Shown: one piece after another, positions 41,880-58,279 of the stretch
Position numbering within the stretch: the first letter of the stretch is position 1
How the letters are laid out: each line of letters starts with the position of its first letter
NCBI GenBank assembly: GCA_965603825.1
Contig: CBFDEM010000004.1
Span: forward strand, 558,001-622,000
Direction: 5' to 3'
DNA length: 64,000 nucleotides
Source: Blepharisma stoltei ATCC 30299
Taxonomy: Eukaryota > Protista > Ciliophora
Translations under genes and position numbers: made by a program
Notes under the pieces: generated by a model
The model's input: only the letters and a program-made list of their open reading frames with translations
What the model was told of the DNA's origin: nothing
Databases searched by the model: none

Positions 41880-42329
41880 TTATTCATCCCATTTACAGAA
41901 TTCGCATGCGTTAACAACTACTCCTTTGCATCCTCTATCGCCTCTTGGTCCTGTGCATCCTTTAGGTCCTTGTTCTCCGACACATCCAGTAGGACCTTTT
42001 GGTCCTGGGCAGCCAGCAGGTCCACAAGGCCCTTTTGGTCCTTGGCATCCTTCATCGCCTTGGTCTCCTTGTGGTCCTGGGCATCCTTGATCACCTTGTG
42101 GGCCTGGAGGGCCTGGTGGACCTTGTGGGCCAGGAGGGCCTTGAGGGCCAGCAGGACCTTGGCAGCTTTGTGACCCGCCTTTTACTGGTGTAGTATTTTT
42201 AACGAGGGGAGTATTAAGAGCGTTTGCAATTACTGAAGCCTGATTTGTTACTTGCTTACTCTGTAGTAAATTAGGATTAGCAGCCAACGCCGCGACAGCG
42301 AGTACTATTAAAAATGCAGCTCTTACCAT
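41880..42329 (-). CDS. Secreted Cys-rich short collagen-like protein 1 (27 Gly-X-Y), 149 aa
   Basis: ATG at 42329, signal peptide [16 protein letters not shown], 27 uninterrupted triplets GPA...GVV, tail [11 protein letters not shown]. Confidence 0.9.
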
Positions 42330-42364
42330 TATATTATTATATGATATTTTTTTCATTAGTCTCA

Positions 42365-42388
42365 ATATGTTTGAAAATGGTAAAAAAA
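42365..42388 (-). promoter_or_regulatory. Conserved upstream motif, collagen-like gene 1
   Basis: Plus strand ATATGTTTGAAAATGGTAAAAAAA, starting 36 nt upstream of the ATG. Confidence 0.65.
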
Positions 42389-42771
42389 TAGTTTTAATGA
42401 CCCTAAACAGAAATTATATGTTGCATTAGAATCCTATGTAAAAAAAATGATCCGCTCTTAAAAAATTAAAATCAATATCGTTGGTTTTGCCACGTATAGG
42501 AAATTCTTTGAAAAGAATACTTAAAATTAGTCGAATTTAAAGGTAAAAAAAAAATTGAAACAAGCATAGAGTAACTCTCCCAAACGCATTCAATTCTATC
42601 ATAGCTAAAACCTTATTAAAAATATATCAGCAATTTATATTTATATATCCAATTAAGCCATTTTTTATATAAGTAAAGTTTTTTTATTTTATTTCTTGAT
42701 TTTATCCAACCATTAAAATTAAAAATGGCCTTTTTTAACTGATAGGAATATTTTTAATAATTAGTTTAAAC

Positions 42772-43236
42772 TTAGGCATGAATAGCTTCTTCACATGAGC
42801 AATCGTCATCGTCGTATTCTATAATTTTAATGCTGCATCCTTTTGGGCCTGTGCATCCTTTAGGGCCTGGACATCCTTGCGGGCCTGGGCATCCTTGCGG
42901 TCCTTTTGGCCCTTCGCATCCTTGTGGGCCTTGACATCCTTGCGGGCCTTCATCTCCTGGTTCTCCTTGTGGTCCTTTAGGTCCTTTTGGTCCTGGGCAT
43001 CCTTGAGGTCCTTTAGGACCTTGTGGGCCTGGACATCCTTGTGGTCCTTGGCAGCCTTGAGGTCCAGGGCACCCTTGTCTTGTTGTAACGCACTCGTCAA
43101 ATTTTACTGTTTCGGTTTCCACAGCTGGGCAGCCCGATCCTCCAGTTGTTAATAATTTATCTTCCTGTTGTAATAAGCTGGGTTTAACAGCTAAAACAGC
43201 AATAGAAAGTGCTATCAGAATTGCTACTTTTACCAT
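42772..43236 (-). CDS. Secreted Cys-rich short collagen-like protein 2 (27 Gly-X-Y), 154 aa
   Basis: Signal peptide [16 protein letters not shown], 27 triplets GCP...GCS, acidic Cys tail DDDDCSCEE. Confidence 0.9.
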
Positions 43237-43269
43237 TTGATATTATATGCCATTGTTTTTTTAAACTTT

Positions 43270-43292
43270 ATATGCATGCAAATGGTAAAAAA
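43270..43292 (-). promoter_or_regulatory. Conserved upstream motif, collagen-like gene 2
   Basis: Plus strand ATATGCATGCAAATGGTAAAAAA, 34 nt upstream of the ATG. Confidence 0.6.
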
Positions 43293-43570
43293 TAATTAAA
43301 AGTAATTCATATTTTAAAAAATATATATAATTAAACTGAAAAGTTAGAAAATTAGTAGGATTCAGTTGCAAATATTTTTATTAATATCAATTTGATATAT
43401 GATTTTAAAAAATTAATAAAATAAGTGTGACTTTTATATATAAATTTAAGTTATGTATTCTAAATAGGCATCTGTTTTATTTATTCATATTTCAAAAAAT
43501 ACTAGATTTTTTTCTTTTTTAAATAAATTATTAAAAAAATGGCAAATATATAGAAAAATCACTTATGTAA

Positions 43571-44071
43571 TTACCATTGTTTTTGTTCACATTTTATCTC
43601 ATCTCTGTCATCTCTGTCATCATGATCATTGCATGCGCAACTTCTTACAACTTCATCGATTTCCTGGCACCTAATAATAACTCCAGCTGGACCTCTGTCT
43701 CCACAATCTCCTTTTTCCCCTTTGCAGCCTTGCTCTCCACAAAGACCTGCTTCTCCACGTTCTCCTTTGATTCCTGCGCAACCTTGCAGACCTTGGTCTC
43801 CCTTATCTCCTTTTGGACCTTTGTCCCCTTTAGGTCCTTTGCAGCCTTGAGGTCCCTGAGGACCAGGTGGACCTTGTGGTCCTTGGCATCCTTGTTCACC
43901 TCTGTCACCTTTATCTCCTTTTTGATATAAAATTTTTACTTGGCATTCATCTTGTTCGTGTCCACATTGTTGCTGTTGACACTCGTCGCCTTCTAAAAAT
44001 GATCCCTTGAGATTCGGCTTAAATGCAAGGGCGGTTAGGGCGAGAATCATCAGAATTGCAAGTTTGACCAT
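43571..44071 (-). CDS. Secreted Cys-rich short collagen-like protein 3 (27 Gly-X-Y, charge-rich), 166 aa
   Basis: Signal peptide [16 protein letters not shown], 27 triplets GDK...GVI, tail with CAC and DDRDDR. Confidence 0.9.
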
Positions 44072-44103
44072 ATTAATTATCGCATTTCAAAATTTTAGTG
44101 CCC

Positions 44104-44121
44104 ATATGTTTGTAGCATTGG
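44104..44121 (-). promoter_or_regulatory. Partial copy of upstream motif, collagen-like gene 3
   Basis: Plus strand ATATGTTTGTAGCATTGG, 33 nt upstream of the ATG. Only the ATATGTTTG half matches well. Confidence 0.45.
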
Positions 44122-44414
44122 ACAAGATTTAAAGATGGTGGAGAAGACGTTTTCTGATAAATCAGCAATTAAGTATGGCAGTAAAATTCGAAATAAAATA
44201 AGATGGGAGAAGAAAGAGATTTAAATATAGAATATATATATATAAGTACGGATTTATAAGCGATAAGAAGTTAGTGCAATAATGGAAGCGTAGATAAAAA
44301 TATAAGAAAGGTAGGGATTAATCCATGCATATAATTTAATTGAATGAAGAAAATCTTAACTTTGTAGGTTAGGTTTAAACAAAAATCTAGTATTTAAGAA
44401 TTAATAATAATGTA

Positions 44415-46478
44415 TTATCTAATCATCCTATTTAAAATTGCTAAAGAAAGTGGGTTATCATTTTTCATACCTTGCAAACTGTTTTTTAAGTACACAAGAT
44501 TTCTTGAGTGTGACGAGTCTGTATCCTTATCAATTGTTAGTGCTTTTATTATGTTTAGCAAATATTCTATGTCTGCAGCTAGCTGTTTTCCGCCTTGCTG
44601 GCTTAGCTGTTTTATCTGCAAAATTTTTGAAGTGAAAATGCCTAAAAGTGAGTATCCAAGAACAGCAATCCAAAAATGAACATTAAGCCCATGCGGTAAA
44701 TCTTTAGGCGAAGAAACAGAAAACTCAACTATGTAAGCTTTTTCATAATTCATGTCAGGTGAACTGGGTGCCAATTGCTGCAAAAGCCCTAGCAAATGCT
44801 CACCAACAGCTATAATGCTAGGCGATGGGGAAGCTGAAAACTGGGCTACTGGCTCTACTCAAGTTGGAAGAGCATGATAACTATAAAGCTTACCAGCAAT
44901 TGGTAGGTATAAAACTCTAAGAGCTAAATCTTTACTTTCGTCAAGCATTGACTCTAATATTTTTAAAATCCCATTAAAAAACCTCCCCCCTTCTCTTAAA
45001 GTTCTCACAAAATGCTGGCATTTTTTGGCTAAATTCGGATTATTTATTTGTATTGCATCCTGAAGTTCTTTTTGCTCTGTAAATTCTGTTGTGAAATATG
45101 AAGTTGTCATACAGTTTAAAAATTCCTGCCTTATTTTCCCATCAATTCTTTCAACTTCTACATAAAAATCCAACACTTCTTCATAAAACTTTATTGTTGC
45201 TTGGACATCATTTCAGTTTAATTGAAATTGAGTCGAAGGACCTGAAGTAAAGTCAAGATTTGGGAGAGTTTTTATATTATTTTGCAAAACAAAGCTGCTA
45301 ATTTCATTTTTAAATTTTTCTATTTCACTGATCATTGCTTGTTCTATAATCGGACACCATTCTGAAGCCGATGTACCAAGTGTAATTTTCAAACACCTTT
45401 CCCATGAATTTTTGATTTCGTTTAATAAATACTGACTCGATTTTTTCCAATTATCAATGGGATTATCTCTGAAAACTCGAGGAATGTTGGAATTATCAAA
45501 AAGTTTCTTTTCTAGCTGAGTCAGCTTAGTAGAAATTGCAATGATATGCAAAGATATTGGATTTATTGAATTTGTTGCATTTTTCACATAAGAAATCAAT
45601 GATAATAAAGATGTAAAAGTTGGAATAAGTGAATCTATTGGTTGACCTAAAAATAGATCACTAATTCTTTCCTTGCTTAAAATTTGTTCAAATAGTGTTT
45701 CAAGATATGGTGATGGGTCTGGGAAAATAGTTTGAAATAAACTTCCTTCATTTCTGATTCTTTGTAAGACCTCGGAAATCATCTCGTCAAATGTATCAGA
45801 AGTGCTTTTTTGGTAAATTTTTAAGCGATTTCCTACCAAAATTTCTGCAAATTCCATACTATTTTCTAGCTCATTGTAAATTCTATGCAATTTCTTTAGC
45901 TCTTCTCGAGCTTCTTTTTTGCTCATTTCTTCTGTTTTTTTTCTTAGCTTTTCTTTAATTACTCTCATAAAACTTTCAATTTTTTCAACAAATTTTTCGA
46001 ATTGTGGCAATCCTGTCATAAATTTAAGAGATTTCCTCATAGATGCAAACTGTTCTGTAACATTTTCAATATCTTCATTAGAATCTAATAATGCATGCAT
46101 CCTCTCAACTTTGCTTTCAAAAGTTTCTATTTCTTGCAAAGCATTTTTGCAGTCAGAAATCCTTTCTGTAAGAAGATGATCGCGCTTGAGTTCTTCTAGC
46201 TCAGGAGTTTTTAATGATTTGAAAGCGTTTTCGATTCTTTCAGTTTCTTTTATGAGATCTATGGTATCGATAGAGAGAGCTGAGACTTGATCTTTATAAG
46301 ATCCTATATCTTTGAATAAAGATGATGATTTAAATTCAAGGGTAGCTTCGAGATCTTGCTCAAGCAGTTGAAGTTTGATACTTAGAGAGCTGAGTTTTTG
46401 TTCAGGCTGTGAATCGTTTTCTAAAATTGCGTTTAGCCATGATACAGGATCTCAGTTGTCTTGAAATATATCATCCAT
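44415..46478 (-). CDS. COG7: Conserved oligomeric Golgi complex subunit 7-like
   Basis: One frame through TGA at 46452, 45213 and 44859. N-terminus DPVSWLNA...LSSLSIKLQL; C-terminal FSASPSPSIIAVGEHLL and KQLAADIEYLLNIIKAL. Confidence 0.75.
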
Positions 46479-46617
46479 TTTATATGAAAATGATTATTAT
46501 TAGGTATAAATGATATTGCCAAGTAATATTATCTTTAGATGGATACCAAATGTAATTAATTTTTCCAATAGAAATGCCAAGATACGAAAACTTAATTAAT
46601 AATTCGCATCAGATTGC

Positions 46618-47431
46618 TTAATCATTAAATTCGGAAATTTTTTCAAAATTCTTCTTTTCCTTGTTAAATCTAAAACAAAAATAGGACAATCTATCCTTAT
46701 TGAGGATATTTAAACATAAATATGTTAATACTTGAAAATCAATTGAATATATTTTATATCCTTTTGCAAGATTTGCACTTCCAATTGTATTTCATATATA
46801 TGGATTATTAAAACCGCTTTCAAAAACTCTCCTTTCTGCCTCAAAAATGTAAATTCTTGAACTTTCATAAATTAAAATTTTGAACATAAATTTTGAAACT
46901 GTCAAAATTTTGCTATAGCTGTTCAGATCTTCATCATATTCATATACTTTCGAATGGCGAAATCCTGAAAATATAATCTTTTTATTATAAGAAATTGATG
47001 ATATTTCATGTGATGCTTCAGGGATTGGAGATATTGTGATTCATCGACTACTTTTCATTTCAAACTTAGCTGCAAAATTAGAATACTCAAAAATACATGC
47101 TCCTCCAAAAGCATAGATATTACCATTATGGAAAACAATTCCAGGTTTAGAGCAAGGATTACCATGGCAAAACTGGATATAAGCGCCGCTTGCTGGATTT
47201 ATGATGTATGTAGTGCCAAATTCTTGATATGAATTCCCAAAGCAAAATAAAGAGGAGTCAGGGAGTGATATTATAGATGTTCCAGAATCAAGAGGCTCTG
47301 GAGTTTCTATAAAAATTTTATCTTTCTTGTTTGAATTTATATCATAGCTTTTCAATGTTGTAATATCATAACTTCGCCCTATTGAATAGAGCTTAATTTC
47401 TTCGTAAAAAGTTACTATTTTCTTCTGTCAT
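46618..47431 (-). CDS. Kelch-like beta-propeller protein
   Basis: SLFCFGN, NIYAFGG, SSR-W(TGA 47041)-ITISPIP; open to TAA at 46618-46620. The start at 47431 requires a 16-nt intron. Confidence 0.65.
47400..47415 (-). other. Candidate 16-nt intron
   Basis: GTAACTTTTTACGAAG fits GTA-N6-TA-N3-AG. Removal puts ATG 47431 in frame. Confidence 0.5.
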
Positions 47432-47894
47432 CTTTATGAATGCTATTTAATAAATCTTGAAATGTCTTCAGAAATGTTATCTGCAGTTGTGCAAGTTATA
47501 ATATAACTTAATATAATTAAAATAAAATTTTTGTATTCAATTTTGCCAAAGTTTCACATAATTTCTTCTGATGCTAATCAAAGACGTATTATCTTGTTGA
47601 AATTTTATTCTATCACATATAACTTAAAAATTGACTACAAAAGGATGAAAAAGATGCTTAATTTAATGCTTTGATAGTAAATAATTTTTATCATCAATTT
47701 ATTTTCTGCATAGCATAAAAAATTAAAGACATCTCACTAATTATTATTTATAAGCTCTTCCGTCAATAATCTAAGCTCTACGCTAGCTATTCTACTCATA
47801 AAATTATAGATATCTTTTAAATCACCAGTGTATCTTCACTTGACGAAAAGTATCTAACCAGTCTGAAAGTATCCTAGAGTCTATAAAGAATATA

Positions 47895-48788
47895 ATGCAA
47901 CTTGAGCAAAGCATCGACTGCACGCTCCAGGAGTGGACAGATCTTAAGCTAAATAACCTTAGGATCGACCGCAAGCAAAGGATAACTGAAGACATTTTCT
48001 CATCTCTTAAGCTTGGAGAGGCTGAGTCAATAACAGGCACTTGTCTTGCCAAGCATAGCATTACAGCCGAGCTCCGTTCTCGTATGATTGACTGGATGAT
48101 TGAAGTGCTTGCTCAGTACCGTACTTCTGGGCAAACCTTTTTCCTTGCAGTAAAAATTATGGATAAATACTTCCAAAAATGCACTGAATCTTTACCAGCA
48201 ACTAAGTTACATCTAGTCGGTGTAACTTCAATGTTCATTGCATCAAAATTTGAAGATATTTACTCCTTAAGGCTTAAAATCGTATACGAGAAGATCGCTC
48301 ATAAAAGACTCTCTGAAAAGTCAATCAGAAAAATGGAACAAAAAATCCTGAGAACTCTCAAATTTGACTTAGCGATCCCCAATTGTGCAGATTTTTTAGG
48401 ATATTTATGTGAAATAGTGAATCCATCATTAGCAATCAGAAGAACAGCAGAGTTAATTTTGGTTCTTCTGCAGATTTATTATAATACTGGACTTTTGCCT
48501 TCCCAAGAAGCAACTGCAGCCTTAATAATTGCAGCGAATTCTTTGAGACAAGAAAGGCTGGTGCCAAAAATTTTAGACGCGTCAGAATGCTCAGAATTCG
48601 ATATGGCTTTTGTAGTTGATAGAATTTTAAGAGGGATTTATGATTTCCCTAGAAATTTAGGGAGTTTTAAATCCGCGATGAAATTTTTGGGGTTCAGTTT
48701 GATACTAAGAACTCCAGGGCCTCTATTCGTGTTTGAAGATTTAGACGTCCAGGCTGACCAAGAGCAGCTGCTAACAATATTTAATTAA
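47895..48788 (+). CDS. Cyclin with A/B-type cyclin box
   Basis: LRSRMIDWMIEV, TFFLAVKIMDKY, LVGVTSMFIASKFEDIY and MEQKILRTLKFDL. Confidence 0.9.
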   Translation: MQLEQSIDCTLQEWTDLKLNNLRIDRKQRITEDIFSSLKLGEAESITGTCLAKHSITAELRSRMIDWMIEVLAQYRTSGQTFFLAVKIMDKYFQKCTESLPATKLHLVGVTSMFIASKFEDIYSLRLKIVYEKIAHKRLSEKSIRKMEQKILRTLKFDLAIPNCADFLGYLCEIVNPSLAIRRTAELILVLLQIYYNTGLLPSQEATAALIIAANSLRQERLVPKILDASECSEFDMAFVVDRILRGIYDFPRNLGSFKSAMKFLGFSLILRTPGPLFVFEDLDVQADQEQLLTIFN

Positions 48789-48911
48789 TGTAAAAGTAAT
48801 TAATTTGCATAAATTTATTGGGATTTGACTAATTTGAGTAACTATATTAAATTAATATCTTTTACATACTACTCCATCCTATTACTTCCCACGTCCATTG
48901 CTAAATATTCT

Positions 48912-50345
48912 TTACCTTTTGTCGGCTAGCTCTGGATATTTTTTCATTAATTTTGAATAAATTTTCTTCCCAAATTGGCTTCTTTTCAAGTCATCCATAA
49001 GAGGCTTTATATCCCTCATCATTTTTGTAAAAAGCAGAGGCGCAGCTAGGCTTAAAGCTCGCTGTACGACTAAATAAATTTTACCATAATTAGCGAATTG
49101 ATCTGGAATCATTTTTGCCAAATTCTTTGGATTCCCAATTTCTTGTATCATAGCTTGTTGCACTTCACTTTGGTTTTGCTGCAAACATTTTTCTATTACA
49201 TTTGATGAAAATTTCTGAGTTGATAGTTTCTGCATATAAGGGATGAAGATAAATGCCAATCTTGCATTTATATTTGGTGAATTCAAGTCAAGCACATACT
49301 GTACCACGTAATTTCCAAAGGCATCTTGAACTAAAACGACTGCATTTTCGACGATTTTGTCAACAAGAAGATCTAGCTGTCTTGGAGATGCTGCGTCAAT
49401 GCATCTTTGTAAAACGCAGCAGCCATGCCTATGAGTGCCGATATCAATAATATTTAAACTGGTGGCTTCATATATGAAATTAGTATTGGCTTGCCCTAGG
49501 GTATGTAAGCACTTTTGTATGACATGATTTCCATTGATATCTTTAATAAGGGTAATCACGTTATTTTTCAGAGCTTCGACTATGGTTTGTATATGATTCG
49601 GATACTTAGCCACAATATCGAGCAGTTTTTGGACTGCTCTTGTCCCATGAGGACTTAAAGAAATTTGAGTAATTTCATTATAAATGACACTAATAATTGA
49701 CCTTAATATTCCTTCATCACATACCTCCATCAATTTTTGTACTAAATAATTTCCAAAAGGATCTACCATTAGTATTGGCAGCTGCAGCATTATTTGATCA
49801 TAAATTGTCTGAATTGTAAATGGGTTTTGCTCTTCTAGTTTCTTCTGTAGCATTCTGCATCCTATTTGATCTTTAGCCATATCTAAAGCATTTGTGTATA
49901 TATGCTGCGCATTAAACTGTGTAAACCCATAGAACTCTGAGCCACCATAGCTGCTTGGTTGGAAATCTTGGACATTTGGCTGCGAATATTCAGTAAATCC
50001 GCTTGGTGGGTCTTCTTCCTTTATGCATGTATCCACTACATGATTTACCAATACACTTGTAGATCTAGAACGATCATCAGAATCAGAAACTTGGGACATT
50101 TTCCTTGATTGTGTCGTATGCAGAGGCTCATTAAGAGGCGGCGGAATGTTCATTTTTGCCTTATACCTCTCATAAAATTCTTCGTACATCTGATCATTAC
50201 GAATATCTGAGAATGCGATGGTATAGTCTTGCCCCATAGGAAAGGCGAATATCATATTTGAGTCTAGCATAGGAGGAGCGGAAATGGAGCGAGAAGGGTT
50301 GGAATCTCCGGGCACAAGAAACTGATGATAATAAGGAGATGTCAT
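48912..50345 (-). CDS. Pumilio/PUF RNA-binding protein
   Basis: Eight PUF repeats: GCRMLQ, GNYLVQ, GTRAVQ, GNHVIQ, GCCVLQ, GNYVVQ, SSNVIE, and ANYVVQ after intron removal. Confidence 0.92.
   Translation of the reverse strand: MTSPYYHQFLVPGDSNPSRSISAPPMLDSNMIFAFPMGQDYTIAFSDIRNDQMYEEFYERYKAKMNIPPPLNEPLHTTQSRKMSQVSDSDDRSRSTSVLVNHVVDTCIKEEDPPSGFTEYSQPNVQDFQPSSYGGSEFYGFTQFNAQHIYTNALDMAKDQIGCRMLQKKLEEQNPFTIQTIYDQIMLQLPILMVDPFGNYLVQKLMEVCDEGILRSIISVIYNEITQISLSPHGTRAVQKLLDIVAKYPNHIQTIVEALKNNVITLIKDINGNHVIQKCLHTLGQANTNFIYEATSLNIIDIGTHRHGCCVLQRCIDAASPRQLDLLVDKIVENAVVLVQDAFGNYVVQYVLDLNSPNINARLAFIFIPYMQKLSTQKFSSNVIEKCLQQNQSEVQQAMIQEIGNPKNLAKMIPDQFANYGKIYLVVQRALSLAAPLLFTKMMRDIKPLMDDLKRSQFGKKIYSKLMKKYPELADKR
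49070..49084 (-). other. 15-nt in-frame intron
   Basis: GTAAAATTTATTTAG. Removal converts NY-GKIYL-VVQ to the canonical PUF NYVVQ. Confidence 0.9.
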
Positions 50346-50361
50346 ACTTATTAATCCAAAA

Positions 50362-51198
50362 ATGAAAAATCTAAGCTATGGAAGAAATGAAGTTTTGCAT
50401 TTGGAGCCAAAAAGACCTTATCGATATAATGATAGATTAAAGAGGAAAGAGTCTAGAGAAAGGACGGTCCCAAAGGAAGTAAAAATGTGTGTGGAGTCAT
50501 TTGAGGACACTAATACGGAGAGCACTCATACAAGGCAGCCAACTATGATTATCAATAATCTCAGCCAAAGCCAGAGGTTTATATCAGCACTCAGCAATGT
50601 TCCGAGTGATGGGCTGCTAAAATTGGAAACTTCGTTGGACTTCTGGGATTATGGAGTCGGGAGTTTAGATTTAAACTTTGAATACGATTCTGATGAATTT
50701 CTGAGTGATATTTCACGCTTTGAAGATGCTGAAAATACCCAAGAGCCTTTAAAGTCATTTACTCAAGACAGTACAAAAAATTCTATAAAACAGTCATTAG
50801 TAGTAGAAAGCAAAAGCTACATAACACATAAAACGGGCAAAAAGACAAAAATTCTCGGAAAATTAAAAGAATCTACCAATGCAAAACCTACCTTAAGCAC
50901 TCATGAAAATGAGCCCGATTCATATCGAGAAAAAAATTATTATTATGGAAAACAATCTGGATCCCCTCAGAGTGATTTTATAAACTATATAACTTCCAAA
51001 GCATATTGTCCTAAATGTCAATGTGAAGTCTCAACTACTGTAAAATTTAAATTTCCCTCAATGACATTGTAATTTTTATTTAGCTGGCAAAAATTGTGCT
51101 GCAGAACTTGCTATGGAAGTGGTGATTTCAAAGAAATTCTTTATCACTGTAAAAAATGTAAGACTCTCATAACAAAAATTAAAAGAAGCAAGAAATAG
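50362..51198 (+). CDS. LITAF-like zinc-ribbon protein (start codon uncertain)
   Basis: CPKCQCEVSTTV, then after a 15-nt intron FWQKLCC...EILYHCKKC, ending at TAG 51196-51198. Confidence 0.7.
51069..51083 (+). other. 15-nt intron
   Basis: GTAATTTTTATTTAG contains the apparent TAA stop. Removal supplies the second CxxC. Confidence 0.88.
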
Positions 51199-51712
51199 AT
51201 AATTATATTTGCATTGCGTTAGATTAATAAAGGGGTATTAATTGTTGAATAATTATTTCTGAGTGTACATCTTTAGTAAACTCATTTATGTTTAATCAAA
51301 TTTTTTGAGCTTTTCATGAAAAATACTATTTTCGCATAAGAAATTTCTGATGCTAAAACGTCTTAGTGCCTAATATCTAAGAAAATGAGCCGATAATTGC
51401 TGGATATACAAATAATGAGTTTTAAAATTTTGTTGAAAGGTAGCCCCATAAATAATATGCTAAAAATAAAACAACTCAATTATTAGTTGCATAAATTCCT
51501 AAGCTTGTGATAGCATAATCAGCATCCAAGCCCAGAGATCTAAAGCTTTAAAGTTGATAATTTTTCATTAAATAAGCACCCATAATTATAGATACAATTC
51601 AGAAAATTCCTTATAATTAAAAAATTGATATCTATTGCTATTTATAGCACCTAAATTAATAAATTAACCCATCAAAACTATTCATCTACGATTTTTCTAT
51701 TAATTATAATAT

Positions 51713-53805
51713 ATGTTTAAACGTGAATATCTGGAAGATTCAGATAGCTTTTCAGACCCATCAGATCTGGAAAATCCTCCATATGATTAGCAGCACCCTG
51801 GATCATTTCAGCCAGCTCACCTTGAAAGAGATTTTGAAGATGAAGAAAAGCCCAAATATCAAAACCTCCAGCCTGTTGAAGAAAACTACTTTAATACGAA
51901 TCCAGCACCTCCTACTTATTACCAACCACAACCAGGCGAGTATGCAACAGGCGGATACGTCAGAGAAGGCATGGGTGGGTTAAAAATAGGTATCCAACCT
52001 GGAAGAAAAGAAAATAGCGAAAAAGTTGGATTTATTAATTTAGAAGACCCTGAAAAACAAGAGCCACGTCCTGATACAAGCTCAGCAAGGCCAGGGAGCA
52101 GCAATGCTCAAATGCGTGCTCAGATGCTTAAAATGCAAAGAAGTAAATTAATGAGCAGAGGAAGTACTATAACTGCACAAATACAGTCTAGCGATATATT
52201 CATTCCGGGGGTCAGCCCAATGGTTATACAAGGGCGAGAGCAAAATTCTGGGATTCAGTCTTATTTATTCTCGAATCAAATTTTAAAAGAAACAGATTTA
52301 AGCGGTAATAGAGAACTAAGAGGGTTCACTGCACCCAAAAACTTTGTATATGAACCTGGTCCTATAAAGTCTAACCAACCTGATAACTTGCCAGGGCCTA
52401 TTAAGCCTGAAAGAACTGTATTTAGAGCTGAGGAAGAACTTGAAGAAGTAAAGCTTGATGAAGGATCAAGGCATACACCAAGCAAAACACTCCAAGGAAT
52501 CCATAAGCAGCTTGAAGACCAAAAAAATCATCCAGTTCCTTCACCACAATATGAAAGACCTGTCCAGCCTCAGTCTGAAAGCCGATCTTCAACTGCAGCT
52601 GAAAATTTCATTCCTCCTGAGCCGAAATATATCCCTCTTGAATCTAAACCCACAAGCCAGCCTGAACAGCATATCAAACCGCCAATAGCAGAGGCATATC
52701 AACCAAACATTTCTCCTCAAGAAAAAATACCTGCTAGGCCAAATGATCCTCAAAGACAGCAATTTTTTGATGAAAAGCAACATTATTCAAGAGAAGATAG
52801 GCCTACTCCTAATGGACAAGATGAAAGGCGACCGCCAGAAAATAGAATTCCTCCTCCAGATCCCCGAAAACAACAAAATGGCAAACCAGAGCCTCCAGCT
52901 CCAACACATCCTCTTAACAGACCAGATTCTGCAGATGCTAAAAGGGAGCAAAATATTCCTCGACAGCCGTCTGTAAATATTCGTGAAGTCCTAGCCCAAG
53001 AAATGACTGATATGAAGAAATTCCTGACAAGTCCAATCACTCGAGGCATAATGCTGCAATGCAATATCAGACGAGAAAAGCCAGGATTTGGCAGATTATA
53101 CGCAAAATATTATTTTCATATCACAGATGGCATGACATTTCTGCTGGCTGGTAAAAAGAGAGGAGGAAACCGAACCTCAAACTATATGATTACAAGTAAC
53201 CAAAGAGAATTTTCAGTAAAATCTCCTGCATACTCAGGCAAAGTCCGGTCAAATTTCCTTGGAACGGAATTCCATATCTATGACACTGGCATGAATCCAA
53301 AACATAGAGGTGCTAATGCTATGAATGCAAGAGAAGAATTAGCAATTATTTTATATGTAAGCATCATTTAGCAATCAAATATCCTGGGTTCAAAAGGACC
53401 AAGAAAAATGAGAGTTTTGATACCAGCTGTAAATAATGCAGGAGACCATTGTGTCTGAAAGCCAATGAACGTAATATTTACTTAGAAAGAAGACGGGATG
53501 CTTCAGCAATATAATGCGGGAAATACATCAGGGATGCTTTGCTTCTTTAATAAGCCTCCGAAGTGGAATGAGCGTAAATTATAAGCAGATGTACAAGCTT
53601 TTGTGCTAAATTTCAATGGCAGAGTTGATATAGCCAGTGTAAAAAATTTCCAATTGATTGATGATAGAGATGAAAATAAAATTTATATGCAGTTTGGGAG
53701 GTGGGAGATCAAAATTTTAATTTAGACTTCCAGTGGCCATTTTCACCTCTCCAAGCATTTGGAATTGCACTTTCAAGTTTTGATTATAAGTTTGCATGTG
53801 AGTAA
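51713..53805 (+). CDS. Tubby-domain protein with three introns, an in-frame TAG and an apparent 1-nt deletion
   Basis: [51 protein letters not shown] and [20 protein letters not shown]. Confidence 0.85.
53357..53371 (+). other. 15-nt intron
   Basis: GTAAGCATCATTTAG. Removal gives [14 protein letters not shown]. Confidence 0.9.
53471..53485 (+). other. 15-nt intron
   Basis: GTAATATTTACTTAG contains an in-frame TAG. Confidence 0.88.
53574..53588 (+). other. 15-nt intron
   Basis: GTAAATTATAAGCAG contains an in-frame TAA. Removal gives [12 protein letters not shown]. Confidence 0.88.
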
Positions 53806-54133
53806 TATTAATTTATTTGGAAATGGCAGCCTTGAGAAAAATCTTAATAATTATCATTTTATTTTATTTTTATCATTAGATATTTTGAAATGATGTAAAA
53901 TCTAGTAATTTAATTATAATGAAATTCATCAGAACGATTGGAGAATAGGTGAATATCTGCAGCATAAGAAAACTATACAATTAGCATTTTTTTAATACAA
54001 ATTTGTGCCTTTTAAAAGAAGGAAATTCTATTATTTCTAAGATCTTCTGCTTGAAAATAGTTATTTATTTCTTGTGCTACAAAAAATTGCAAAGCAATAT
54101 TATTAAATAATTTATAAGAAAACTCTTATAGCT

Positions 54134-54796
54134 TTACTCCCTTGCTTTAAGCTCTATTGTAGTTGAATCATTATTTTTACGGTCTTCATCCCATGCAATT
54201 TTAAGATTACTCCTATCAAAGGAGTAGTTTGCCCTTGTATCTACTAGACTAGGAAGAACATGCTTTTCTGTTATTCTATCATAAAGAAACAGTGTCATTC
54301 CACATGTATAAACTAATGAAAATACGCTTGTCCCCACTGATATTATTAGCACATAATTTCAGTCTCCTAAGCTACCTCCATTATATACTTGCAAAATTAT
54401 TTGAGGGATACTTTTAATAAAACCTTGGATTACACCTGTAATTTTTGTCATAAAATCAATTAATTCTCTTTCTTCTCTTTTAGATTTGTTGAGATAAATA
54501 TAAACTGCAAAAATAATCAGCGTTAAACCAGTTTGTTCGCCAAAGGCAAAAAATAAGCTCAAACCTGCTCTAAAGCACAAAAGTCTTCTTTTATTCCTTA
54601 TAAGATCATAAAATGTTGTTAAAATGCATAAAGAGACGATAAGGATTCCTGGGGCGACCAAAAATAATATAGACGCGTAATATAAAGTTCTACTTGCAAA
54701 GTGCTGAGTGAGAATGTAATATATGTCTGTTAATAGGTCTATGATATTTGCAACACCTCCTAATAAGAATAATAAGGTATCAGCTTTCAGGCCCAT
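54134..54796 (-). CDS. Multi-pass membrane protein, XK-related-like
   Basis: Joined through TGA at 54359. DLLTDIYY and KSIPQIILQVYN resemble XK-related motifs; several TM segments. Confidence 0.55.
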
Positions 54797-55723
54797 TATT
54801 ATAAGCTAATTATTTCTTTTCATTTGAATCTTTTTAAATTTATTAAGACAGTTCTATTTTGGCTTTATATCGAGAAAATGATTTTTCTTATTAAAAAAGG
54901 ACATTAGAGTTTGATTAGAATATTTTTTAAAATTATTAAGATTGTTAATTTTCTGAGTGAGTATATTTTGGCTATTTCTAGGCAAATAGACTAGCCATCT
55001 TGATTTATTTAATATTAGCACATCCAAACTTATTAAAAAACAATTCAATTAATTTAAAAAATTGATTAGATAGGTATTAAATAGATTTGAATTGCTTAAT
55101 TATTTAGTGAGAAATTATAGTATAGAATTAGCTGTTAAAATAAATTATAGATAAGCTAAAATTTTAAGTAATTTAGGGCTTAGCATATAAAGGAAAATCT
55201 TTGGCAATATAAATATGTTATATATGCGTCCTTGGCTGTTGCTTAAATTTAATAGTTCATATGCAGACATGGTAATATAAGATAGAATATGTCAATGATC
55301 AAATAATACTCGTAGAGATTGTGACAGGAGTATATCTTTCCTTTAGAAGAATAAACTCTGAAGTATCTATTTATATTGCCTTATTAAAAGTTTATTTAAG
55401 GATAGATAAAATTCCTTGTATGAATAGTAACTTTTTGGTAATCAAAATAGAATAATAAGAAATGGATAATATCAATCCCTAGACTATCAGCAGACTCTGC
55501 TAGATTCATAATGAGATAGGCCCTAAATTCTGAGCAAATAAGAAATAAGTCAGGAAGGAAGGAAGGATAGAATCTGATAAATACAAAATAAGATAGGTCT
55601 TAAACTTTGAGAGCAGGTAAAATATGGTATAAATGGCGATTTTCTATCCTTGTTATTTATTTAGAGAAAACTCATAATTTATGTTTTTGAAATTTTATAA
55701 TATATTCTTAAAGATTTGCGTTT

Positions 55724-56233
55724 CTATTTGCTATGAATCTTGGTTGAAACAAAGTTTACTTCACTTGCTCCACATTCATCATTGCAATCTGGTGTTGGAA
55801 CTGACACGCATTTCACGCTTACACCTCTAGGACCTTCGTCTCCTTGGTCACCCTGGCATCCTGCGCAACCTTGAGGGCCTTGACATCCGACTTCTCCATC
55901 TGGTCCTTTTGGTCCGTCTTCTCCTTTTGGTCCTCTTGGGCCTTTACAACCTTTAAGTCCACATGGTCCGCATGGTCCTGGACATCCTTGTGGTCCACAT
56001 GGTCCGCATGGACCTGGTGGACCTTGTGGTCCTGTTGGTCCTTGTGGTCCTACTGGTCCAGCACAAACATCATCGATTTTTTCGTCATATTCAAAGCATT
56101 CTTCTGCTTTACAACCTCCACATCCATCATCGACTCCTTGAATTAACCCAGTATTTTTTACTTGCTTAAATAAAGTTGGTTTGACTGCCGATACAGCAAT
56201 AAAGAGTGCGATAAGAATTGCAATCCTAGCCAT
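55724..56233 (-). CDS. Secreted Cys-rich short collagen-like protein 4 (27 Gly-X-Y), 169 aa
   Basis: Signal peptide [20 protein letters not shown]...ECF N-terminal region, 27 triplets GPV...GVS. Confidence 0.9.
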
Positions 56234-56266
56234 TATGTTATATTATACCAGTATTTCATCGTGCTA

Positions 56267-56290
56267 ATATGTTTATAAATGGTGAAAAAA
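56267..56290 (-). promoter_or_regulatory. Conserved upstream motif, collagen-like gene 4
   Basis: Plus strand ATATGTTTATAAATGGTGAAAAAA, 34 nt upstream of the ATG. Confidence 0.65.
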
Positions 56291-56725
56291 AATATAAATA
56301 GTCCTATCAGAATTATGTAGCATTAAAATGGATTATTTTAGCAATGAAAATTATTAAAATATTTCATTAGAGCTATTTTTTGATTTCAATTTATTAGAAC
56401 TTGTAGTGACTTTCTTCATTATAAAGTTTTTATACTTGTTTAATGCAATCTATATTAGTTTGCCAAGAGTCATAAATAGTTCAATAATTCGAAAAATAAC
56501 CTATAAACGATAAAAAATTTTAAATAAGCAATTTCGAATCAATATAAATAGGCCTAAATAATTAAATTTGCTTTTAGGTTAGAGCATAATCATAATTTCA
56601 AAGAAATTCATAATTTATAAATGCTAAGCAAATCATATGTTTTTCTTTAAAATTTATCTTTCGTGAGTTTATTTTAGTTTGATGGTTATAGTGCAATGTA
56701 GCCGAATAATTATAGTTAATTAAAT

Positions 56726-57214
56726 TTAATTTGCTCCGCATTCATTATTGCAATCTGGTGTTGGAACTGACACGCATTTCACGCTTACACCTCTAGGACC
56801 TTCGTCTCCTTGGTCACCCTGGCATCCTGCACAACCTTGAGGGCCTTGACATCCGACTTCTCCATCTGGTCCTTTTGGTCCGTCTTCTCCTTTTGGTCCT
56901 CTTGGGCCTTTACAACCTTTAAGTCCACATGGTCCGCATGGTCCTGGACATCCTTGTGGTCCACATGGTCCGCATGGGCCTGGTGGACCTTGTGGTCCTG
57001 TTGGTCCTTGTGGTCCTACTGGTCCAGCACAAACATCATCGATTTCTTCGTCAAATTCAAAGCATTCTTCTGCTTTACAATCGCCACATTGTCCTTCACC
57101 AACTCCTTGAATTAGCCCAGTATTTTTAACTTTGCCATCTTCTTGCTTAAATAAGCTTGGTTTGACTGCCGATACAGCAATGAAGAATATGACAAGAATT
57201 GCAATTTTGACCAT
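56726..57214 (-). CDS. Secreted Cys-rich short collagen-like protein 5, tandem paralog of protein 4, 162 aa
   Basis: Collagen domain is identical in amino-acid sequence to gene 4, at a DNA offset of 966 bp. Confidence 0.9.
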
Positions 57215-57246: not shown

Positions 57247-57270
57247 ATATGTTTGCAAATGGTGAAAAAA
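57247..57270 (-). promoter_or_regulatory. Conserved upstream motif, collagen-like gene 5
   Basis: Plus strand ATATGTTTGCAAATGGTGAAAAAA, 33 nt upstream of the ATG. Confidence 0.65.
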
Positions 57271-58279
57271 ATGTCTTTAAATAATCCTATCAGAAAGATT
57301 TTTTTATATTTAAATAAATTTAATGGTAGTTAATTACCTTTGTCTTTCATCAATATAAATAATTTTATTTCGAACTGCCTCATATTTACAGCTAACAACT
57401 TTATTATTAAAAATGTGTATTTATTAGCATTTAGATCCGTGAAAACTCTAAAGCAGGGTCCATGAATTGTTTAAATGCGCTAAATAAATAAACAAAATAT
57501 AAGAGACACTTCATTGAATGAACCAAACTTAAGAGCTCATGAAATAATTGAAATTTATAAAATTAACATATTCTATATTAGACTAATTTGATACCTAAAA
57601 CTTAAACTCTGTAATTTGATGTTATGAATTTTATTGCATAAGCTTATGATTATTTCAGTACTTGCACACTGATGCGATCTGGTGATTTATATGCCAAAGG
57701 CTCTGCGAAGTATGCAGTATTATGCTAAAGAATATAAATGCGTTTGATTGTTGATTTTGTTATTTTGCAGCAGTTCAGAGAAGGGGGTATGAAAAAATAT
57801 GTTACCTTTAAAAACTTATTAACGATCAGAGATCTTAATTATTTTTTCATATCCAACTAATACGCTAACCTTAATGTAGTACATGCATAAGGCTAATAAC
57901 TCTAGAATAAGTAAGATGAGTGCATCAAATCACACAATTGAAAGCCATGCAGTGTGCCTCAATTCGTTAGGCTGATTGTCATGCATTTCATATTGCATCA
58001 GACATTACACATGATTAAAGCCATATGCATATAGCATCACAGGCTATAGTTATGACACTCAATATCTTTCATAATTAGGCCATGTAAATACTTACTGAAG
58101 TGTCTTAGAAGATGCACAATTCGTGGAGCCAATGACTTCAAAGAATGTCGAACTCTTTAATAAAAGTATTAAATGCAATATTATATATATCTTTTACTTC
58201 CAGCTCATCCGCAATTTACTTTTTGCTTACAAAAACTCTTTATAAAATGTTTTGAAATGATATTTTATTGATGAAATTA

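Follow-up and report, generated by a model that had tools for sequence, protein, structure and literature searches.

We examined a 64,000-nucleotide stretch of the genome of the ciliate Blepharisma stoltei ATCC 30299 (assembly GCA_965603825.1, contig CBFDEM010000004.1, positions 558,001 to 622,000; hereafter the window), in which five minus-strand genes encode short collagen-like chains. An original prediction, made from the sequence alone, had described them as five secreted mini-collagens of a ciliate-type genome, each with exactly 27 Gly-X-Y triplets. Translation of the coordinates bears out the five genes and the count in each, and the ciliate is B. stoltei. The genes are as follows.

41880..42329, minus strand: collagen chain type 1, 149 amino acids, Pro/Cys-rich; helix 41916-42158, 27 triplets
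42772..43236, minus strand: collagen chain type 2, 154 amino acids, GC-x/GPQ alternating; helix 42832-43074
43571..44071, minus strand: collagen chain type 3, 166 amino acids, Lys/Asp/Glu-rich; helix 43676-43918
55724..56233, minus strand: collagen chain type 4a (chain 4), 169 amino acids, GPC-rich; helix 55817-56059
56726..57214, minus strand: collagen chain type 4b (chain 5), 162 amino acids, recent tandem duplicate of 4a; helix 56783-57025

All five open reading frames (ORFs) start with ATG, stop with TAA or TAG and need no intron, and the longest Gly-X-Y run is 27 uninterrupted triplets in each. Every chain matches the Pfam family Collagen (PF01391) above the cut-off, with E-values of 1e-14 to 1e-16, and the Pfam search of the five found no domain besides the collagen repeat. 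Inspection by eye shows a signal peptide in each chain, as had been proposed, with a basic n-region, a hydrophobic core of 12-14 residues and a small-residue cleavage site. It is confirmed that the five window genes encode signal-peptide-bearing, intronless collagen-like chains on the minus strand. The 27th triplet (GVV, GCS, GVI or GVS) is also the start of a conserved hydrophobic C-terminal motif, whose consensus is G-V-S-V-K-C, and the canonical helix is therefore best described as 26+1. The helices of chains 4 and 5 are identical (synonymous divergence, dS, 0.03), so the claim of distinct chains stands for four independent types in the window, not for five.

Pfam and family-profile searches of the B. 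stoltei macronuclear genome (41.46 Mb, 64 contigs), which carried out the proposed scan for further genes of this kind, yielded a family of 13 genes. The window holds five of them, contig C53 three, C3 two, and C34, C48 and C50 one each, six contigs in all. Eleven of the 13 have 27 triplets; the claim that every chain has exactly 27 holds for the window and fails for two members outside it, with 28 and 20. The members to which we refer individually are the following.

C53:717592-718056: type 1 paralogue, 28 triplets
C53:716770-717234: type 2 paralogue
C53:715829-716374: type 3 paralogue
C50:173458-173856: divergent member, 20 triplets, helix without Cys (CAG9329985.1)

Across the family, N-terminal flanks range from 42 to 74 amino acids and C-terminal flanks from 11 to 119; tails are 11-37 amino acids in most members, and some members have long Ser/Asn/Gln-rich tails. 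Most chains carry 10-16 cysteines, about half of them inside the helix. The C50 member bears the automatic UniRef name "Ficolin" yet has no fibrinogen domain. A collection of 15 billion proteins contains the exact sequences of only chains 4 and 5 and the C50 member, and those of the ten other genes are missing.

The three genes on C53 match the trio at 41.9-44.1 kb of the window in both order and orientation, and they adjoin paralogues of a Tub gene and of two other window neighbours (identities 64-66% and 27%). Given this conserved arrangement, we regard this C53 segment as an old segmental duplicate that retained all three types; dS of the duplicate pairs is 0.55-1.0. The duplication extends over 41880-53400 in the window and C53:708000-718100, and comprises the Tub gene, the ORF at 50362-51072, an ORF near 46600-47400 and the collagen trio. 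For the window's cyclin gene and PUF gene, C53:708000-718100 holds no match, and C53 has no type 4 copy. In the family tree, each type is paired across contigs with full support, and long stems separate the types.

The best database matches of these genes are bacterial and phage collagen-like proteins and ten genes are unannotated, as would be expected of a contaminant, a recent bacterial or phage transfer or a non-coding artefact. We consider such an origin extremely improbable, since the matches share the generic repeat and not the terminal motifs, and the genes, spread over six contigs, have eukaryotic neighbours and germline internal eliminated sequences (IESs) between them. In addition, one member uses UGA, which B. 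stoltei reads as Trp, the GC content at third codon positions (0.19-0.32) matches that of neighbouring host genes, and the ratio of nonsynonymous to synonymous change (dN/dS) is about 0.1-0.25, with 0.13-0.22 in the helices of duplicated pairs. Contamination is rejected on the neighbours, IESs, UGA usage and host-like composition, and the 13 genes are genuine host genes under purifying selection. The window locus of chains 4 and 5 matches the macronuclear-plus-IES assembly GCA_914767885 at 98-100% apart from IES insertions, which lie at 56625-56627, about 50702, 53183, 57383, 57810-58105, 60861 and 61577. An insertion of ~2.47 kb separates chains 5 and 4, and the coding sequences of these two chains hold no IES, in a comparison that did not cover the trio region.

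The fixed length had been taken as a sign of selection. The constancy extends beyond the window, and probably beyond what inheritance would give. Between types, 22-65% of the X/Y residues are identical (median for all pairs 35%), and given this low identity together with the widely varying flank lengths, the helix length looks selected. On the other hand, the length could have been inherited from one 27-triplet ancestor if whole-triplet indels are rare in codon-diversified repeats, with the chains serving as independent secreted homotrimeric spacers or coat proteins. Consistent with that explanation, nine of the 13 helices have few (0-2) adjacent near-identical 9-nucleotide units, and the members with 20 and 28 triplets show that other lengths are viable; however, four helices with 4-6 such units did not slip either. 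The flanks of six pairs took 15 indels, three of them whole triplets, including one tandem expansion beside the helix. At the flank rate, the helix should have taken about nine triplet indels across the tree, while 0-1 are seen (predictive p 0.026 under a rough null, with a weak p of 0.43 at the lower bound). For many between-type pairs, X/Y identity is as low as 22-35%, yet both the length and a cysteine at the X position of triplet 9 were held; this cysteine is in register in seven of eight lineages (p 0.0002), and a Pro-rich block is conserved at triplets 4-8. When the type 1 pair is aligned, the best solution has a single internal triplet gap balanced by a Gly-to-Ser substitution where the helix begins. 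This would amount to a compensated change, and the pair can also be read without a gap. Overall, helix length is likely to be under selection, and simple inheritance is an unlikely explanation.

The composition of the helices suggests how they could be held together. X positions are mostly Pro (42%), Glu (18%), Cys (17.8%) and Asp (15%), and Y positions Gln (35%), Lys (27%), Pro (9.6%), Arg (9%) and Cys (5.7%). As homotrimers, the charged chains (type 3, both C3 members, C34 and C48) would form 19-30 axial Lys/Arg-Asp/Glu pairs, above the triplet-shuffled level (p 0.000-0.05), and the Pro/Cys-rich types 1, 2 and 4 would form 1-4. This supports a charge layout suited to a triple helix, the formation of which is itself a prediction; an AlphaFold monomer was uninformative (pLDDT 54). 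Pairing of in-helix cysteines within trimers was not above shuffles, which fits links between rods instead. The sole 2-oxoglutarate-Fe(II) oxygenase match to PF13640 found, a lower bound, has no signal peptide, and we infer that the helix may be stable with little need for hydroxyproline.

The conserved trio raises the question of whether types 3, 2 and 1 form an obligate ABC heterotrimer, with equal length needed for register. C1q offers a parallel: its A, B and C chains differ in type, come from three tandem genes and have a helix of about 81 residues. The trio is kept whole, in order and orientation, in both copies of the old duplication while type 4 has no C53 copy. Types 1 and 2 would form few salt bridges with themselves (1-4), and among the ABC registers type 2/type 1/type 3 scores best in each cassette. 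One cassette gives 9 salt bridges against 4.7 expected (p 0.02) and the other 10 against 4.6 (p 0.002), both uncorrected, with six orders tested and the two cassettes not independent. However, an ancestral charge pattern common to all chains could explain this signal, and type 3 homotrimers have 25-30 salt bridges, far more than any mixed trimer. The single-gene loci C34 and C48 are also at 27 triplets, and the type 1 paralogue is at 28. An obligate heterotrimer is possible, and on this evidence we lean against it.

The collagen genes also share a short element upstream of their start codons, which in the window is found at five places on the minus strand.

42375..42380, minus strand: CCATTT, -51 from the type 1 ATG
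43280..43285, minus strand: CCATTT, -49 from the type 2 ATG
44133..44138, minus strand: CCATCT, -67 from the type 3 ATG
56277..56282, minus strand: CCATTT, -49 from the type 4a ATG
57257..57262, minus strand: CCATTT, -48 from the type 4b ATG

Genome-wide, CCAT(C/T)T precedes 12 of the 13 genes at -46 to -69 (C50 at -88), and the remaining gene has a one-base variant at -50; only 3 of 50 other gene starts have the element (Fisher p 2e-9; shuffles mean 0.4). The upstream regions of types 1, 2 and 4 can still be aligned to each other, so ancestry contributes to the sharing. The element supports co-regulation of the collagen genes as a reading of the sequence. Extended promoter patterns revealed no co-regulated non-collagen gene, with one extra match inside a coding gene, and the three leader-sharing non-collagen proteins that were checked are without the element at the collagen position. 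The genome holds at least 14 chitin synthase genes, three of them clustered on C20. In four runs guessed to be RNA, short contigs (depth 2-7) cover coding parts of types 1-3 and of their C53 paralogues, and none lies on the spacers of these regions, consistent with low-level transcription in those samples. Both the low signal and the missed annotation would be in keeping with a programme confined to certain conditions, for example encystment.

Shortly after the signal peptide, all 13 chains have a relaxed hydrophobic-hydrophobic-Q/E motif (shuffle chance 5-20% per lineage), and only the two type 3 chains have the strict form S-F-h-E. The motif resembles sites of apicomplexan aspartyl proteases, since plasmepsins IX and X (PMIX/PMX) and TgASP3 have the consensus SF*hQ/E/D (PMC13637054), and the aspartyl proteases that mature Tetrahymena granules cluster with the apicomplexan enzymes (PMC4142616). 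Cleavage of the collagen leader is putative, and we infer routing through granules from the same motif. A collagen-type leader is also carried by five non-collagen secreted proteins, mostly acidic. One of them, at C56:185873 (plus strand, about 345 amino acids), has a long Asp-rich, Cys-punctuated repeat and a C-terminal motif like that after the collagen helix, and the tail of chain 3 has a similar Asp/Arg/His stretch. This protein is a candidate partner in the collagen structure; its gene has no collagen-type upstream element. A leader of this kind, of the K-P-x-x-F-K...F-L-Q type, recurs in proteins at C12:355162, C63:526182 (a long Ala/Glu/Tyr repeat), C21:185242 and C22:25990, and a Pfam search of the C63 and C21 proteins gave no matches.

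Taken together, we think it reasonably probable that a Blepharisma-lineage family of 13 secreted collagen chains, jointly switched on, builds a disulfide-cross-linked extracellular material. The common upstream element, the signal peptide and the short leader ending in hydrophobic-hydrophobic-Q/E, all visible as sequence patterns, would mark the first step. The chains would then be routed into regulated secretory granules, where a CTH3/ASP3-type aspartyl protease may trim the leader. By the general rules of collagen assembly, trimerisation would follow, probably from the hydrophobic/Cys motif just past the helix, giving rods about 81 x 0.29 = 23 nm long, presumably stabilised by X-position proline and by salt bridges between Lys/Arg at Y and Asp/Glu at X. 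Finally, the rods could be joined into a network by cysteines, most of which occupy the exposed X position or lie in the two tails. Such a geometry needs one rod length, hence selection for 27 triplets whether the trimers are mixed or pure. As to the product, B. stoltei makes walled cysts (PMC8891572); a layer of the resting-cyst wall is plausible at somewhat less than an even chance, and a discharged extrusome or capsule matrix is a weaker possibility. More tentative still than the family-wide proposal is a fuller version, which we doubt as a whole, in which a unicellular alveolate independently evolved a multi-chain collagen system. A co-regulated cassette would encode an ABC heterotrimer resembling that of C1q, alongside further chains of 27 triplets. 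Matured in secretory granules, with no need for hydroxyproline, and polymerised through disulfides, these would form a wall or extrusome capsule of fixed period and thus converge on cnidarian nematocyst walls.

Several points weigh against a cross-linked, length-selected material. The indel null is built on three events, with the lower bound given above; two members deviate from 27; and the common motifs may partly stem from shared ancestry. None of the 14 chitin synthases has the element at -45 to -70 (gene starts inferred from ORFs), so no link of the collagens to a chitin cyst-wall programme was found. The four runs are all from one study, and their being RNA is a guess. The chains could also be soluble or surface recognition or adhesion proteins, such as stalks like those of defence collagens or a prey or mating glue, rather than a scaffold. 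The helix length equal to that of C1q, the long Ser/Asn/Gln-rich tails of some members and the name "Ficolin" on the C50 member would fit this, but there is no globular head, tails are short in most members, Pfam finds the collagen repeat only, and the 10-16 cysteines of most chains suit a polymer. We consider recognition or adhesion quite unlikely. The chains of this family, 11 of 13 with 27 triplets, probably build a cross-linked outer structure (cyst wall or discharged capsule) of a kind described so far mainly in animals.

Beyond B. stoltei, searches with single chains and with alignments were swamped by collagen-like proteins of bacteria without either terminal motif. The N-terminal profile, run against 1.84 billion representatives, returned B. 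stoltei proteins and one repeat artefact only, and the C-terminal region search gave no candidates. A metagenome pattern scan gave none, a related-loci scan gave 80 loci, all unrelated, and ESM Atlas and PDB returned generic collagens and generic collagen repeats. No homologue outside B. stoltei was found in these searches, whose power is weak because most of the species' own members lack annotation and leave-one-out scores come close to the limit of detection.

Searches of the literature brought up no collagen system in Blepharisma or in ciliates at large, and the family is apparently undescribed so far. The claim of novelty is narrowed by Linden and King (2021, bioRxiv 10.1101/2021.10.08.463732), who had already catalogued collagen domains in Tetrahymena, Paramecium, Ichthyophthirius, Oxytricha and Stylonychia. 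Their survey gives domain counts without family or function, detected none in the Stentor coeruleus proteome and did not include Blepharisma. Collagen domains of stramenopiles, alveolates and Rhizaria in that survey have a median length of 85.5 amino acids and a median proline content of 0%, versus about 25% of X/Y positions in Blepharisma. With ten of the 13 genes missing from public proteomes, surveys will undercount such non-animal families. The case has been made that cross-linked collagen superstructures are an innovation of animals (Linden and King 2021); if our reading is true, a diversified, co-regulated and length-locked ciliate family would be a clear convergent case. The protein component of heterotrich cyst walls or extrusomes is poorly known, and the family supplies named candidates for it. 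Short chains with intronless genes and little Y-position proline lend themselves to synthesis or recombinant expression, so that chain selection (homotrimer or heterotrimer) is directly testable.

The parallel drawn earlier with minicollagens and nematode cuticle collagens is sound for short, secreted, Cys-rich chains and breaks down at the defining features of both. The Hydra nematocyst minicollagens N-COL 1-4 (PMC2289959) are likewise small, secreted and Cys-rich, with a short uninterrupted helix of narrow length range and, as is proposed, a disulfide network that is produced within a secretory organelle. However, they have 14-16 triplets rather than 27, polyproline on both sides of the helix, which is absent in all 13 Blepharisma chains, and terminal cysteine-repeat domains, whereas the terminal Cys spacing in Blepharisma differs among types and gives no such Pfam match. 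About half of the Blepharisma cysteines are in the helix, and there is no homology past the repeat. Cuticle collagens (PMC11304992) resemble the family in being multigene, short and secreted, and their N-terminal processing and disulfide links have predicted counterparts in Blepharisma. Yet their helix is interrupted and falls into 2-3 blocks flanked by Cys clusters, they carry furin RxxR sites and they depend on hydroxyproline, in contrast to one unbroken block with cysteines within, a hydrophobic-Q/E leader motif and low Y-proline. The heads of C1q, ficolins and collectins (gC1q, fibrinogen, lectin) were not found in Blepharisma chains by Pfam. Bacterial and phage collagen-like proteins (Scl1/2, BclA) are alike in X-position Pro, Y-position Gln/Lys/Arg and, as predicted for Blepharisma, a charge-stabilised, hydroxyproline-independent helix, but the matches have almost no Cys in the helix, differ greatly in length and bear anchors or globular domains. 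Membership in the minicollagen, cuticle-collagen and C1q/defence-collagen families is rejected on these missing features; as the chains are without the defining parts of minicollagens and cuticle collagens, the likeness to those animal systems is one of function.

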